64,000 nucleotides of DNA, from positions 6,076,001 to 6,140,000 of the forward strand of contig NC_043011.1 in the NCBI RefSeq assembly GCF_006345805.1. The letters are read 5' to 3'. Under the pieces are notes generated by a model. The model was not told the origin of the DNA and made no database searches. It worked only from the letters and a program-made list of their open reading frames with translations. This document shows, piece by piece, positions 81 through 19,050 of the stretch (within the stretch, counting starts at the first letter, position 1; each line of letters opens with the position of its first letter). Source of the stretch: Octopus sinensis. Taxonomy: Eukaryota. The position numbers were made by a program, and so were the translations under genes.

Positions 81-104
81 ATTTATGAATGGGAGTCTTA
101 TCCG
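81..104 (-). CDS. 24-nt micro-exon m1 (xDKTPIHK)
   Basis: ttttttgtatttttcag|CGGATAAGACTCCCATTCATAAAT|gtaagt. Confidence 0.5.
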
Positions 105-1112
105 CTGAAAAATACAAAAAAGTCAAATGAAATGGAATGTCACCATCATCATCATCAACATCATCATCATTGTTTAACATCCCTTTTTGCAGGCTGGCAT
201 GGATTGAACAGTTTGCTTGGAACTGAGAGATCAGAGGATGGTGCTGAGCTCCGTTGTCTGCTCCGGCCGGGTTTCTACGGCTGGATGCCCTTCCTAATAC
301 CAACCACTTTACAGCATGATTTCTTTGATGGGGTGGGGCCAAGAGCAGTAGAGTGTTCACCAGTTGCTTGCAAGTCAACTGGGTGGAGGTGGGTGTACTA
401 CTGAGGGAGGTTGAAAGTGTAACAGAGCGACAGCAGCAGGTGTGTTTGCTGAAGACATGAATATATGTACATCATATTCATTTGCCATCATCATCATTAC
501 CAGCATCACCATCACAAGAACTATGACAAACATTAACCAAAGAAGAGGAAGGAGAATTAGTTGGGGTCTTTTTTAAAATCTTTTTGGCATTTAAGGAATG
601 TGTAGATGATGTTTGGGTATCTTTAGATCAGAAAAGTATTAACCCCTGCTGTTAGGGGTATAATCTTAATACTTGGTGTAGAATGCTTCTAAAGATAGCC
701 ATGGGGCACTATTAAACCCAGAAGATATGATGTGCCAACCATTATTTAATGTTTGTTTTCCATGCTGGCATGAGTTGAATGCTTTGGCAGGAAATAGCAA
801 CTCAGGGGTGGCTTACAGCTGAAAGTCCTTCCTACTGCCAACTACTTTACAGAGTGTACTGGGTGCTTTTTACATGGCACCAGCTGCAGTTAGGTCCCCA
901 AGCAACTTGCTGGACAAAACCCCTCAATTGGGAGGGAGAGAAAATGCTGTTAAGTATTTTGCCCGGCATACTGACAATTCTGCAACTCATTAACTTAAAA
1001 ATAATAATCAACATCATCATCATCATCATCATCATCATCATCTCATCATCATCATCATCATCATCATCATCATCATCATCATCATCATCATCATCATCAT
1101 CATCATCATCAT

Positions 1113-1519
1113 CGTTTAGCATCCGCTTTCCATGCTAGCATGGGTTGGACGGTTCAACTGGGATCTGGGAAGCCGGAAGGCTGCACCAGGCCCAGTCTGA
1201 TCTGGCAATGTTTCTTCGGCTTGATGCCCTTCCTAATGCCAACCACTCCGTGAGTGTAGTGGGTACTTTTTACGTGCCACTGGCACAGGTGCCAGACAGG
1301 GCTGGCAAACGGCCACGATTAGATGGTGCTCTTTACGTGCCACCGGCATGGGGGCTAGGCGTGGCTTATAACAGCCACGAACAGATGGTGCTTTTTACGT
1401 GCCACCTGCACGAGGCCAGACTGGGCGGCGCTGGCAATGCCCACGTTCGGATAGTTCTCTTACTTGCCACCGGCACTGGTATCACAGCTGCAATTTCCAT
1501 TGATGTTGATCAATTTCGA
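1113..1519 (-). mobile_element. RTE 3'UTR fragment with long (GAT)n tail; duplicate at 3364-3758
   Basis: Aligns to ~53759-54105. Confidence 0.85.
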
Positions 1520-1619
1520 TAATAATAATAATAATAATAATAATAATAATAATAATAATAATAATAATAATCATCATAATACAAATAATAATAATAACAA
1601 TAATAATAATAATAATAAT

Positions 1620-2052
1620 AACCACAGATTTGTTCGTCAGTTGTTTGACCTTAACCAGTTGAGCATTTCCCTTCGTCGCTGACGATATGTGCATCTCTGA
1701 TCACGAGCAGAAGTAGTGGAGGAGCATCATGGCCATGTGTTGAGAGGGATTCTTTGGGGTTTGATTAATTCACCTCTGGAAACATTGGTGTTTCGTTCAA
1801 CATCCTTAAACAATCCTTATTCCGGGACCTTTTTAGTGGGATGGGTTACTCAACCAGAAGAAAATTCTAATCAACTCCCACCTGCAAGGTCATGTGCTGT
1901 TTATCTTGATATGAGATCACCATGTCATGCACATAGGGTTGTGATGCATGTGCCTGGTGTACCTTTATCAGACGGGTAGTCATGATGGGTATGTTGGGGT
2001 TTGTATATTTTACCCCAGTGTCACTTTGATGGCATGAACTGCTCTCTCACAC
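1620..2052. repeat. ~430-bp unclassified element flanked by (TAA)n; copies at 9131-9376 (truncated) and 15302-15735
   Basis: Direct alignment of copies; (AAT)n at both ends; no recognisable protein. Confidence 0.65.
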
Positions 2053-2168
2053 AATAATAATAATAATAATGATGATGAAGATGATGATGATGATTAAAGT
2101 AACATAAGCAATAAGGAAATATGTATTTTAAAGGGTTTAAAAACCTGAGGAATGCTTAGAAAGCTTAC

Positions 2169-2244
2169 CTTCAGACTGAAGAATGATTGCTAAGATAAGA
2201 AGAAAGGAGGTTGCTGATGCCATGTTATTGCTTGTAAAACTAAT
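2169..2244 (-). CDS. Putative signal-peptide exon S1 (ATG at 2223; MASATSFLLILAIILQSE)
   Basis: gatacag| ... |gtaagc. Two amino-acid changes relative to S2-S4. Confidence 0.5.
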
Positions 2245-2675
2245 CTGTATCCAGTGAAGACCACAAATGTATTTTAGACAATAAGTGGGTGTGTGTATGG
2301 TCTTTACACTGATGATGCTTCCCAACCACTTGGTTCTGGGTTCAGTCCCACTGTGTGGCAACTTAGCAAATGTTTTCTACTGCAGCCTCAAGCTGACCAA
2401 AGCCATTTGAGTGGATTTGGTAGACAGAAACTGAAAGAAGTTTATTATGTGTGTATAGTGAGGTTGATTCATAGTTTAAGGTGTTGCTGCCCCAGGATGG
2501 TCTGCGGTCTAATGACTGAAACAAGTAAAAGATAAAAAATTCAAAAGAGTCATATCAAGGAGAGGGTGTGGAGGCATGCCAGGAGTGGTGTTGGTGAGTT
2601 TTGAGAAGCAGGGAGTTCTAGAAGGATCTGCTGATGGGGAAATGGTAGTCTTTTAGAAAGCGAGGGAGTACTTAC

Positions 2676-16369: not shown

Positions 16370-16393
16370 ATTTATGAATGGGAGTCTGGTCCG
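16370..16393 (-). CDS. 24-nt micro-exon m7 (xDQTPIHK)
   Basis: ttcag|CGGACCAGACTCCCATTCATAAAT|gtaagt. Confidence 0.45.
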
Positions 16394-17578
16394 CTGAAAA
16401 ATACAAAAAAGTCAAATGAAATGGAATGTCACCATCATCATCATCAACATCATCATCATCATCATCACCACCAACACCATCACCATCATCATTGATAGAG
16501 GTGGAGATATTAGCAGTGGTGATGGTGGTGGTGGTTGTGGTGGTGGTGGTGGTGGTGGTGGTGGTGGTGGTAATTCAACATCTACTTTTACACTACCCCC
16601 TGTGACGTCTTCAGGTCAGGTCTATAATCTAAAGATAATCTCCCCCCACCCTTTCCTACCAACCTCAGAGACCTCCCCTCTACCCCAAAGGAGTCACAGG
16701 TGGTTGCTACCCTTGGACTTCTTACTGAGTCATGAAAACAAAAAATATTTTTAAAAAAGCAAGAAAGTGGTAGAAGCATGTCTAAAGACCTGTCTTTGAG
16801 GCAGCAATAATGTTCCGAATTTGAAAGAATCCTGAAGATTTTTGCAGAAAAAGTACCTTGGGGAATTTCTTATGGATCTTTACATGTTCTGAGTTCAAAT
16901 TTTGCCAAGACCAATTTTGACTTTTATCTTTTCTGTGGTCAAACAAATTACCAGTCAAGTCATGACAGCCAGTCGAAGTGACTAATCTCTCTATCCTAAA
17001 TTGTGGTTTTTGTGCAAAGATTAGGATCACAACAACAACAACAACAACAACAACAACAATCCTTTCTACTCTTGGCACAAGTCCTGAAATTTTGGGGGAG
17101 GGAGCCAGCTGATTAGATCGGCCTCAGTACACAACTGGTACTTAATTTATTGACTCTGAAAGGGTGAAAGGCAAAGTTGACTTCGGCAGAATTTGAACTC
17201 AGAATGTAAAAACGTGGATGCTTCCCAACCACTTGGTTCTGGGTTCAGTCCCGCTGTGTGGCACCTTAGGAAGTATTTTCTACTACAGCCTCAAGCTGAC
17301 CAAAATCATTTGAGTGGATTTGGTAGACAGAAACTGAGAGATGTTTGTTATGTGAGTAAAGTGGGATTGATTCGTAGCTGAAGATGTTGCTGCTCCAGCA
17401 TGGGCTGCAGTCTAATGACTGAAACAAGTAAAAGATAAAAAATTAAAAAGAGTCATAACAAGGAAAGGGTGTGGAGGCATGCCAGGAGTGGTGTTGGTGA
17501 GTTTTGAGAAGCAGGGAATTCTAGAAGGATCTGTTGACGGGGAAATGGTAGTCTTTTAGAAAGCGAGGGAATACTTAC

Positions 17579-17602
17579 ATTTATGAATGGGAGTCTTGTC
17601 CG
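17579..17602 (-). CDS. 24-nt micro-exon m8 (xDKTPIHK)
   Basis: Same exon sequence and splice sites as m3. Confidence 0.45.
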
Positions 17603-18170
17603 CTGAAAAATACAAAAAGTCAAATGAAATAAACCTTGTATGATTACCATTTCTTGTTTGTGCGTTTGATAAATATTTTCCGGAATGTTCCTGAAGTTAA
17701 TGTGTAGCATCAGCTTTGTACTCATCAAGCACAACCATACTACAAAGAATTTTGAAATGAATCTAATTTCTCTCTATTTTCACTGACACATCTTTTCCTG
17801 CAACTAATTACATCATCATCATCATCTGGCAGGAAGGTAATAGTATTGTGATCAGGCATAGCTGTGTGGTAAGAAGCTTGCTTCCCAACCACTTGGTTCT
17901 GGGCTCAGTCCCACTGCGTGGCACCTTCAGCAAGTGTTTTCTACTGCAGCCTCAGGCTGACCAAAGCCATGTGAGTGGATTTCGTAGACAGAAACTGACA
18001 GAAGCCTGTTGCATGTGTATGTGTGTTTGTCCCCCAAGATCATTTGACAACTGGCATTGGTGTGTGTACCTCCCCAGGAGTAATATTGGTGAGTTTTGAG
18101 AAGCAGGAAGTTCTAGAAGGATCTGTTGATGGGGAAATGGTACTCTTTTAGAAAGCGAGGGAATACTTAC

Positions 18171-18194
18171 ATTTATGAATGGGAGTCTTGTCCG
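18171..18194 (-). CDS. 24-nt micro-exon m9 (xDKTPIHK), first exon downstream of S4
   Basis: tttttgtatttttcag|CGGACAAG...AAAT|gtaagt; phase-compatible with S4. Confidence 0.5.
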
Positions 18195-18974
18195 CTGAAA
18201 AATACAAAAAAGAATCATCATCTATTTCTTTACTACCCACAAGGGGCTAAACACAGAGAGGACAAACAAGGACAGACTAAGGGATTAAGTCAATTACATC
18301 GACCCCTATGCGTAACTGGCACTTTATTTATCGACCCCGAAAGGATTAAAGGCAAAGTCGACCTCGGCGGAATTTGAAATTACAACGTAACGACAGACGA
18401 AATACGGCTACGCATTTTGCCCGGCGTGCTAACGTTTCTGTCAGCTCGACGCTTATCATCATCATCATCATCGTTTAACATCCCTTTTTCCATGAGGACA
18501 GTGCTGAGCTCCATTGTCTGCTCAAAGCAGAATTTCAACAGAGGAAATGCATTTTACCTGGTCTGTTAATGGTTCTGCCAGCTTGCTGCCTTACCAAATA
18601 AAAATAATAATAATAAATAGTTTCAAATTTTGGCGCAAGGCAAACGCATTTGGGGGAGGGGAAGAGTCGAATACATTGACCCCGGTACTCAACTGATATT
18701 TATTTTATCAATCCCAAAAGGATGAAAGAGTAAAGTCAACCTCAGAGGGATTTGAGCTCAGAATGTAAAGATAGACGAAATGCCATTAAGCAGTTTGCCT
18801 AGCATGCTAAAATAATAATAATAATAATAATAATAATAATAATGATAATGATAATGATAATAATAATAATAATAATAATAATAATAATAATAATAATGAT
18901 TACAGTAATATAAGCATTAACGAAATATGTATTTTAAAGCATTTAAGAACCTGAGGAATGCTTAGAAAGCTTAC

Positions 18975-19050
18975 CTTCAGACTGAAGAATGATTGCTAAG
19001 ATAAGAAGAAAGGAGATTGGTGATGCCATGTTATTGCTTGTAAAACTAAT
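18975..19050 (-). CDS. Putative signal-peptide exon S4 (ATG at 19029; MASPISFLLILAIILQSE + phase 1)
   Basis: gatacag|ATTAG...CTGAAG|gtaagc; 55 coding nt giving a hydrophobic core and a phase-1 end, typical of secreted-protein first coding exons. Rightmost copy. Confidence 0.6.

Follow-up and report, generated by a model that had tools for sequence, protein, structure and literature searches.

Tandem signal-peptide exons and 24-nucleotide micro-exons in the 5′ half of a probable secreted-protein gene of Octopus sinensis

Introduction

Can a run of very small exons, interspersed with copies of a signal-peptide exon, belong to a single secreted-protein gene that varies its product, and how would such a gene compare with those already known? 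The question is raised by a stretch of 64,000 nucleotides (nt) of the Octopus sinensis genome (CM016873.1:6076001-6140000; hereafter the window), whose minus strand carries, within positions 81-19050, recurrent copies of an exon with a start codon and a leader (the S exon) and of a 24-nt exon (the micro-exon). The surrounding DNA is eukaryotic and repeat-rich, with a guanine-cytosine (GC) content of ~40% and many microsatellites. Our analysis indicates that window 81-19029 (minus strand) is very probably the 5′ half of one protein-coding gene, LOC118766410, making a predicted secreted protein from S, micro-exon and cysteine-rich domain modules.

A preliminary description of this DNA had likened the array to the micro-exon genes (MEGs) of schistosomes. 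MEGs are defined by a signal peptide, by coding sequence held mostly in very small symmetrical exons, by variants generated through alternative splicing and by expression at secretory or exposed surfaces (PMC4350168; bioRxiv 10.1101/2023.06.21.545858), and they 'appear to be restricted to platyhelminths' (PMC4350168). In the literature we found no description of LOC118766410, of its peptides, or of micro-exon genes in molluscs.

The repeats are exons of an annotated gene

Chained translations of the S exon and the micro-exons were exploited as queries in three word-based protein searches, together spanning lengths of 23-493 amino acids (aa), of a database of 5.8-billion clusters. A query padded to 282 aa and scored over residues 1-90 returned one sole match (E = 3.5e-55), the 170-aa 'uncharacterized protein LOC118766410 [Octopus sinensis]' (XP_036365701.1 / A0A7E6FD79). 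This protein consists of the leader MASPISFLLILAIILQSE, eleven octapeptide units and a 64-residue tail with 8 cysteines, and the units read, in order, ADKTPIHK, SDKTPIHK, SDQTPIHK, four times SDKTPIHK, SDEETIHI, SDEIPIHI, SGKTPIHK and WDEVPIPK. The preliminary description had predicted the leader to be followed by A-DKTPIHK and then by a chain of S-DKTPIHK, and the protein indeed begins so; its notion of a 'hidden' system, on the other hand, falls away, as RefSeq already annotates the gene.

The fetched locus (L001; GCA_006345805.1, CM016873.1:6043185-6105029, reversed) is 100% identical to the window over their overlap (L001 29029-1 versus window 1-29029), a window position being 29030 minus the L001 position. 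The coding sequence of LOC118766410 occupies CM016873.1:6053185-6095029, starting at window 19029, the ATG of the 5′-most S copy, and ending 22.8 kilobases (kb) past the left window edge, the side on which the gene body had been expected. Leftward extension recovered two ordinary exons there, exon 13 (L001 49535-49652, 118 nt) and exon 14 (L001 51770-51845), which together encode a basic 64-aa domain with 8 cysteines and are followed by a TAA stop and an AATAAA signal.

The whole gene holds 9 S exons, 16 micro-exons of 24 nt and the two ordinary exons, with the AG/GT sites and frames of S exons and micro-exons all intact. XP_036365701.1 was rebuilt at 170/170 residues by joining AG/GT-bounded exons: S copy 1 and micro-exons one to three, then four of the six later Lys-type exons in any choice, and lastly the final four micro-exons with exons 13-14; the fifteen equivalent picks of the four middle Lys-type exons all give the exact protein. 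The RefSeq model accordingly uses S copy 1 and 11 of the 16 intact micro-exons, leaving out five micro-exons and the eight internal S copies. LOC118766410 is an annotated, uncharacterized gene, and the repeats are real exons.

Could the model nevertheless be a prediction artefact? In such a case the locus would be non-functional, with chance open reading frames (ORFs) and splice-like motifs multiplied by segmental duplication, and the protein does lack a homologue in the database as well as any Pfam or PDB match. However, the exons yield a coherent 170-aa ORF over 14 exons, complete with leader, 8-Cys domain, stop and poly(A) signal. Moreover, an ab initio predictor is not expected to link eleven 24-nt exons over 30 kb while passing over identical ones and, to our knowledge, a Gnomon model that is purely ab initio and without protein homology is not released by the NCBI pipeline. 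For an orphan model linking eleven 24-nt exons, this release practice implies transcript support. We return to the artefact below, in the light of the variation among the copies.

Internal signal-peptide exons as candidate alternative first exons

Pattern searches of the window, allowing up to 3 mismatches and controlled by dinucleotide shuffles, recovered four S copies with a 60-nt probe over the ATG exon, and eight micro-exons with a 45-nt acceptor/exon/donor probe, a ninth, more diverged micro-exon being located at 2676-2699. All are on the minus strand within 81-19050, 0 matches are expected from the shuffles for either pattern, and neither pattern search nor self-comparison detected an S or micro-exon copy in the remaining 45 kb of the window. 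The four S exons and nine intact phase-1 micro-exons initially reported are thereby reproduced.

The S exon provides the ATG together with a hydrophobic, signal-type leader of 18 residues; its last base is the first of a codon (phase 1). Copy 1 (18975-19029) is the 5′-most and the RefSeq coding start; it encodes MASPISFLLILAIILQSE plus 1 base in phase 1, before a GTAAG donor. Copy 2 (15855-15909) resides inside the intron between micro-exons u3 and u4, as an alternative first exon or a skipped passenger. Copy 3 (13866-13920), 100 nt upstream of micro-exon u5, belongs to a short-intron type of unit, and copy 4 is at 2169-2223. The fourfold recurrence stated earlier stands, although not all copies are alike: the donor of copy 3 is GTAAT rather than GTAAG, and copy 4 encodes MASATSFLLILAIILQSE, while the other three share MASPISFLLILAIILQSE. 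Across the gene, the S probe found 9/9 copies intact, with ATGs at L001 10001, 13121, 15110, 26807, 29404, 31557, 35920, 38943 and 40117; seven of the leaders are identical, one reads MASATS... and one MALPIS....

Several features of the leader, taken with the junctional alanine (MASPISFLLILAIILQSE-A), are those of a signal peptide: an 11-residue hydrophobic core, a Kyte-Doolittle 9-residue mean of up to 3.7, Ser at -3 and Ala at -1. Residues 4-18 were modelled as a helix by single-sequence AlphaFold2, in a whole model with a predicted local distance difference test (pLDDT) score of 43. The leader would be cleaved after Ala19, releasing a basic mature protein.

S had originally been taken as a 76-nt exon with a 'cag' acceptor. 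This part of the description is doubtful, since the proposed acceptor has a weak pyrimidine tract with another AG 9 nt upstream, and in one off-window copy the sequence upstream of -30 is unrelated to that of the other copies. Furthermore, as an internal exon the 76-nt version would bring a TAG in frame. With this TAG and the poor acceptor, the internal S copies are not usable as internal exons, and would thus either be skipped or represent alternative first exons, giving stalks of 1 to 15 modules. From the sequence, S is more probably a first exon than an internal one of 76 nt, and we see an even chance that the internal copies act as alternative first exons that give shorter stalks.

Immediately upstream of S, 1/30 columns is variable from -30 to -1 in all nine copies, all with an intact ATG and donor, and 2/26 from -56 to -31 among eight of the nine. 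In seven S copies (in the window at 13975-14000, 15965-16010 and 19040-19085) a TAAAATA motif precedes the ATG by 55 nt; in one off-window copy it does so by 37 nt, and another copy has TAAAGTA. The motif could be a TATA box if S is the first exon, though the spacing is inconsistent.

Frame-neutral micro-exons and the predicted product

Each micro-exon is exactly 24 nt, flanked by ...tgtatttttcag and gtaagta, with an open phase-1 frame; the AG/GT sites of all window micro-exons are intact and none has a phase-1 stop, in agreement with what had been noted. The first two bases close the preceding codon and the last base, T, opens the next one, with the junction codons G+CG = Ala (S to micro-exon), T+CG = Ser, T+GG = Trp before DEVPIPK and T+CA = Ser (to the ordinary exon). 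Between micro-exons the junction residue is Ser, except for Leu or Trp in two copies. As the exons are phase 1-1 with compatible junction codons, any ordered subset of micro-exons stays in frame.

In the direction of the gene (minus strand), DKTPIHK is encoded by u1 (18171-18194), u2 (17579-17602), u4 (14301-14324), u5 (13742-13765; Lys = AAA), u7 (8126-8149) and u9 (81-104; Asp = GAT), DQTPIHK by u3 (16370-16393) and u6 (9647-9670), and DQIPIHK by u8 (2676-2699). The first base of u6 is T, making its junction TTG = Leu, and neither u6 nor u8 is used by the RefSeq model. A different dispersed repeat replaces the intron upstream of u1 to within 18 nt of the AG, and u5 has the oldest flank of the window copies, with ~84% identity to the rest. 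The tally first made from these nine copies, three synonymous changes (GAT/GAC, AAG/AAA, CCC/CCT) and three amino-acid changes (K/Q, T/I and the junction TCG/TTG), proved correct.

The sixteen micro-exons of the gene start at L001 10836, 11428, 12637, 14706, 15265, 19360, 20881, 26331, 28926, 29559, 31078, 34220, 35650, 37849, 39656 and 40272. The one counted as the sixteenth (L001 31078-31101), 2.0 kb left of the window, reads CGGATGAAGATATCATTCATAAAT (DEDIIHK) with normal AG/GT and is outside the RefSeq protein. Of the RefSeq coding sequence, 264/513 nt (51%) are micro-exon; the share is 59% in a 15-exon build and, by arithmetic, ~61% with the sixteenth. A strict scan of ~90 kb on both strands for a pyrimidine tract + YAG + 6-120 nt + GTRAGT revealed only 2 exon-like structures outside the array; the motif is uncommon, though single chance occurrences exist. 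A stop-free frame of 55 codons without an ATG (LFCIFQRTRLPFINVSIPS...) also spans each micro-exon and its donor in another frame (window 14225-14340 and equivalents), and was rejected as incompatible with the RefSeq frame and probably meaningless.

The donors bear on a different organization, an array of two-exon mini-genes in which S and one micro-exon are read through the donor (...ADKTPIHKCKYSLAF, stop; ~33 aa), with poly(A) addition at an AATAAA ~225 nt downstream. Read-through indeed meets a stop after 7 codons, and the younger copies are followed by an AATAAA, located at the edge of a short dispersed repeat. Yet AATAAA is missing from the older copies while the GTAAGTA donor is kept in 16/16, the donors serve as splice sites in the RefSeq protein, most micro-exons lack an accompanying S, and no database protein of 23-73 aa contains S/micro-exon words. 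We regard mini-genes as exceedingly improbable.

The product of LOC118766410 would instead be secreted, with a hydrophilic, probably disordered (S-D-K-T-P-I-H-K)n stalk, variable in length and sequence, followed by a disulfide-rich head. The predicted mature protein is basic (isoelectric point 9.4). Its stalk is built of Lys/His/Pro/Thr-rich 8-residue modules without Cys (grand average of hydropathy -1.3), and the cysteines of the basic head are spaced C-9-C-4-C-7-C-7-C-4-C-2-C-13-C. A borderline DUF963 match was rejected as an artefact of the repeat.

Is the stalk actually varied within the animal? That several isoforms arise by micro-exon skipping is somewhat more likely than not. A rival scenario is a real gene without diversification, where only the 5′-most S is used, the internal S copies are dead passengers and the micro-exons are constitutive in one fixed repeat protein, i.e. 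a recently expanded coding repeat split into exons. RefSeq indeed lists one isoform, the internal S copies are young, which makes their intactness weak evidence of use, and the database contains no shorter isoforms at 23-157 aa (a 90-aa chain query against proteins of 50-157 aa and a 42-aa chain query against proteins of 23-73 aa found no match). On the other hand, the RefSeq model omits 5/16 equally intact micro-exons, so that some are skipped in at least that transcript, and the sequence upstream of S is near-unchanged from -56 to -1 in eight of the nine copies, with -30 to -1, the ATG and the donor kept in all nine. We consider a gene without diversification unlikely, also in view of how the micro-exons have diverged.

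Micro-exons diverge faster than their introns

The 16 micro-exon copies align gap-free from -16 to +100. Variable columns amount to 14/24 in the micro-exon, 2/24 in the splice signals and 26/92 in the intron (+9 to +100), the micro-exon differing both from the intron (p = 0.008) and from the splice signals (p = 0.0005). In some pairs of copies, near-identical introns accompany very different exons, for example at L001 34220 and 40272, with 3/116 intron versus 7/24 exon differences (Poisson p = 4e-6), and the four 3′-most micro-exons differ from the canonical consensus at 22/96 exon versus 28/482 intron positions. The S exon is variable at 3/55 columns, versus 7/36 in its intron. A probe of the downstream intron flank alone recovered 16 copies, all 16 with an intact exon, and no decayed S or micro-exon was detected among the copies recovered by the intron-flank and S probes. 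The conservation of S copy 3 was also considered as a sign of selection and was rejected, its unit having arisen by recombination between a young block and an older one.

Selection would hold the splice signals and the leader, whereas the coding sequence of the micro-exons diverges several-fold faster than their own introns. A conserved leader and conserved splice signals combined with hypervariable coding sequence after the leader is, as far as can be read from these alignments, what fast-evolving secreted proteins show, as opposed to neutral decay. Such divergence is hard to explain if the content of the micro-exons is irrelevant, as it might be in one fixed repeat protein. It likewise touches on the prediction artefact raised above: nonsynonymous and synonymous changes occur at about the neutral ratio and no significant constraint is seen within the window, which would suit a non-functional locus, but neutral decay would not leave splice signals the least and exons the most variable, nor all 16 micro-exons and 9 S exons intact with no decayed copies. 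Aggregated, these observations and the coherence of the ORF render a non-functional locus very unlikely.

Several points nevertheless weigh against our reading of the gene. A rough count of nonsynonymous to synonymous events in the micro-exons gives ~3:1, near the neutral expectation, and the case for positive selection thus rests on the exon-versus-intron rates. That contrast could be mimicked by gene conversion of the introns, with selection retaining exon differences, and, since the copies share a phylogeny, the pairwise p-values exaggerate the significance. Taken by themselves, the nine copies of the window show no significant difference between exon and flank rates; for these nine the original caveat, that the copies are too young for intact splice sites to tell of selection, was fair, and it is overcome once the older off-window copies are included. 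Apart from XP_036365701.1, no protein of 23-493 aa in the 5.8-billion-cluster database has S/micro-exon words, and by locus look-up its exact sequence is encoded by no other contig, leaving no independent transcript-derived or orthologous support. The 8-Cys domain has no match in Pfam or PDB sequence searches, and the AlphaFold2 model of the protein is unreliable at its pLDDT. To this adds the single annotated isoform, and that splicing, promoter use and isoforms of LOC118766410 are all deduced from sequence.

It is, then, with clear reservation that we propose, as a possible but tentative reading, that a MEG-like diversifier has evolved independently in a cephalopod. Nine alternative promoter/signal exons and sixteen frame-neutral micro-exons would give combinatorial secreted proteins with one Cys-rich head on stalks differing in length and sequence, under diversifying selection and in an array that is still expanding.

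Comparison with micro-exon genes and other exon arrays

The octopus gene shares with schistosome MEGs an N-terminal signal peptide, here predicted from the features of the leader, and tiny symmetrical exons of a multiple of 3 nt, so that skipping would keep the frame. These very small symmetrical exons make up most of the coding sequence, 51% being a borderline 'most'. Also alike are the long retroelement-rich introns, the recent lineage-specific expansion and the accelerated coding evolution (PMC4350168; bioRxiv 10.1101/2023.06.21.545858). In contrast, the gene is from a mollusc and is non-homologous: neither a platyhelminth host nor homology to a MEG family was found (word searches at 23-493 aa, Pfam). 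Its micro-exons are all 24 nt and phase 1-1, tandem paralogues of one octapeptide repeat; they constitute 51-61% of the coding sequence and are followed by a conventional 8-Cys domain, and the signal exon is present nine times in one gene. The earlier comparison with MEGs is hence sustained for the architecture, but not as kinship. Judged by its predicted exon organization, the gene is a convergent MEG-like architecture and not a MEG family member, and the homogeneous 24-nt tandem exons and the nine interleaved signal-exon copies are features not reported for MEGs.

The nearest analogue is Schistosoma VAL-6, in which tiny symmetrical exons are joined to ordinary exons of a globular domain (PMC4350168). 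Unlike the unclassified 8-Cys domain of the octopus gene, that of VAL-6 is an SCP/TAPS domain, in another phylum, and in the octopus gene a homogeneous tandem array of micro-exons separates the signal peptide from the domain. In the variable first-exon clusters of the clustered protocadherins and UGT1A, tandem 5′ exons precede shared exons, each encoding a different large variable domain. The octopus locus similarly has several tandem 5′ exons upstream of common ones, the choice of which would set the product if each has a promoter; its S exons are however near-identical, and it is the number of downstream micro-exons that would vary. With fast-evolving secreted-protein families it has in common a conserved leader and rapid change after the cleavage site, although in those families the variation is among paralogous genes, and here among tandem exons of one gene; moreover, the hypervariable part is the linker repeat instead of the Cys-rich domain, of which the octopus gene has a single copy. 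Finally, the equal length, equal phase and similarity of the exons and their flanking introns, in blocks 88-99.5% identical, place the locus among tandem exon duplication arrays.

MEGs are regarded as peculiar to parasitic flatworms and are linked to immune evasion; a gene of equivalent structure in a free-living mollusc would demonstrate convergence on one design: a phase-1 signal exon, a run of symmetrical micro-exons, and fast-changing coding sequence between conserved splice sites, all arising by ordinary repeat-mediated duplication. The locus would then be a young, still-legible case of how such a gene is built, with duplication layers from 88% to 99.5% identity and an ancestral-looking minimal unit at its 3′ end. 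The interleaved signal-exon copies predict nested isoforms. That 24-nt exons are easily overlooked is illustrated by the gene model, which is without the intact micro-exon at L001 31078 and eight S copies.

Growth of the array by repeat-mediated duplication

Self-comparison resolved overlapping duplicated blocks of 88-99.5% identity, a layering that bears out the view of an array 'caught expanding'. Two types of unit exist, with S followed by a micro-exon after an intron of either 0.8-2 kb or 100 nt. The 100-nt intron holds only the tail of a short repeat, identifying the short-intron unit as a deletion derivative. At a higher order, a block of micro-exon/S/micro-exon/S/micro-exon occurs three times (L001 ~12.6-15.4, 26.3-29.7 and 37.8-40.4 kb), the 3′-most of which bears the most diverged exons. 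Here the ninth S copy (MALPISFLLILAIILQSE) is found 100 nt upstream of the last micro-exon (DEVPIPK; L001 40117-40295), after which come the Cys-domain exons. It is plausible from this arrangement that S copy 9, the DEVPIPK exon and the Cys-domain exons (~90 aa) represent the ancestral minimal gene.

From such a minimal gene of S, micro-exon and Cys-domain, the locus would have grown 5′-wards as S/micro-exon modules were unequally duplicated again and again, the breakpoints falling in short interspersed repeats and microsatellites. The positions of the breakpoints make it likely that unequal recombination between interspersed repeats drove the duplication. One such repeat (16010-16232), represented at least 8 more times in the window, takes up the u3/S copy 2 junction, and equivalent copies are at ~13980-14168, 17219-17446 and 17852-18075, with a further one separating u8 from S copy 4. 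These copies probably served the duplications as substrates or breakpoints. Based on copy number and size we presume it to be SINE-like (short interspersed nuclear element), while ARAGORN detected no tRNA-like heads in it. The (GAT)n tail that directly precedes most micro-exons comes from a second family of short dispersed repeats. In copies of this family, at window 3501-3708 and 59390-59602, a 62-nt unit is repeated ~3.3 times.

Might the micro-exon itself be part of a dispersed repeat? This candidate was rejected, as no window copy of the flanking repeat outside the array bears the exon or its ~190-nt flank. The micro-exon and ~190-230 nt around it are unique to the array, and the short repeats elsewhere in the window (at least 8 copies) carry neither, which substantiates, as far as the window shows, that the unit is locus-specific.

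Retroelements and neighbouring features

Two non-LTR (long terminal repeat) retrotransposons are inserted antisense in the introns of the array, on the plus strand. The first (4200-7840), between u7 and u8, retains an intact 648-aa reverse-transcriptase ORF at 5390-7336 (RVT_1 + zf-RVT), and a 94% copy of its 3′ end (window 6968-7844) is present at L001 56827-57712; the ORF may belong to a recently active element. Exploited as a control query, the reverse-transcriptase ORF gave generic retroelement matches only. The second (10900-13101), between u5 and u6, is decayed.

Outside the window, an intronless gene for a 758-aa protein with DC-STAMP/Dcst2 Pfam domains (L001 41703-43979, opposite strand) lies, in antisense orientation, within the 9.2-kb intron that separates the last micro-exon from the Cys-domain exons. 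Within the window, positions 35259-42014 form a 6.7-kb degenerate (ATAC)n / 22-nt-period AT-rich simple repeat, with 14-19% GC and a GC skew of -0.8 to -1.0, which yields long spurious ORFs in every frame. Lastly, an AG-rich compound satellite with periods of 72 nt and 42 nt occupies 49105-49513.

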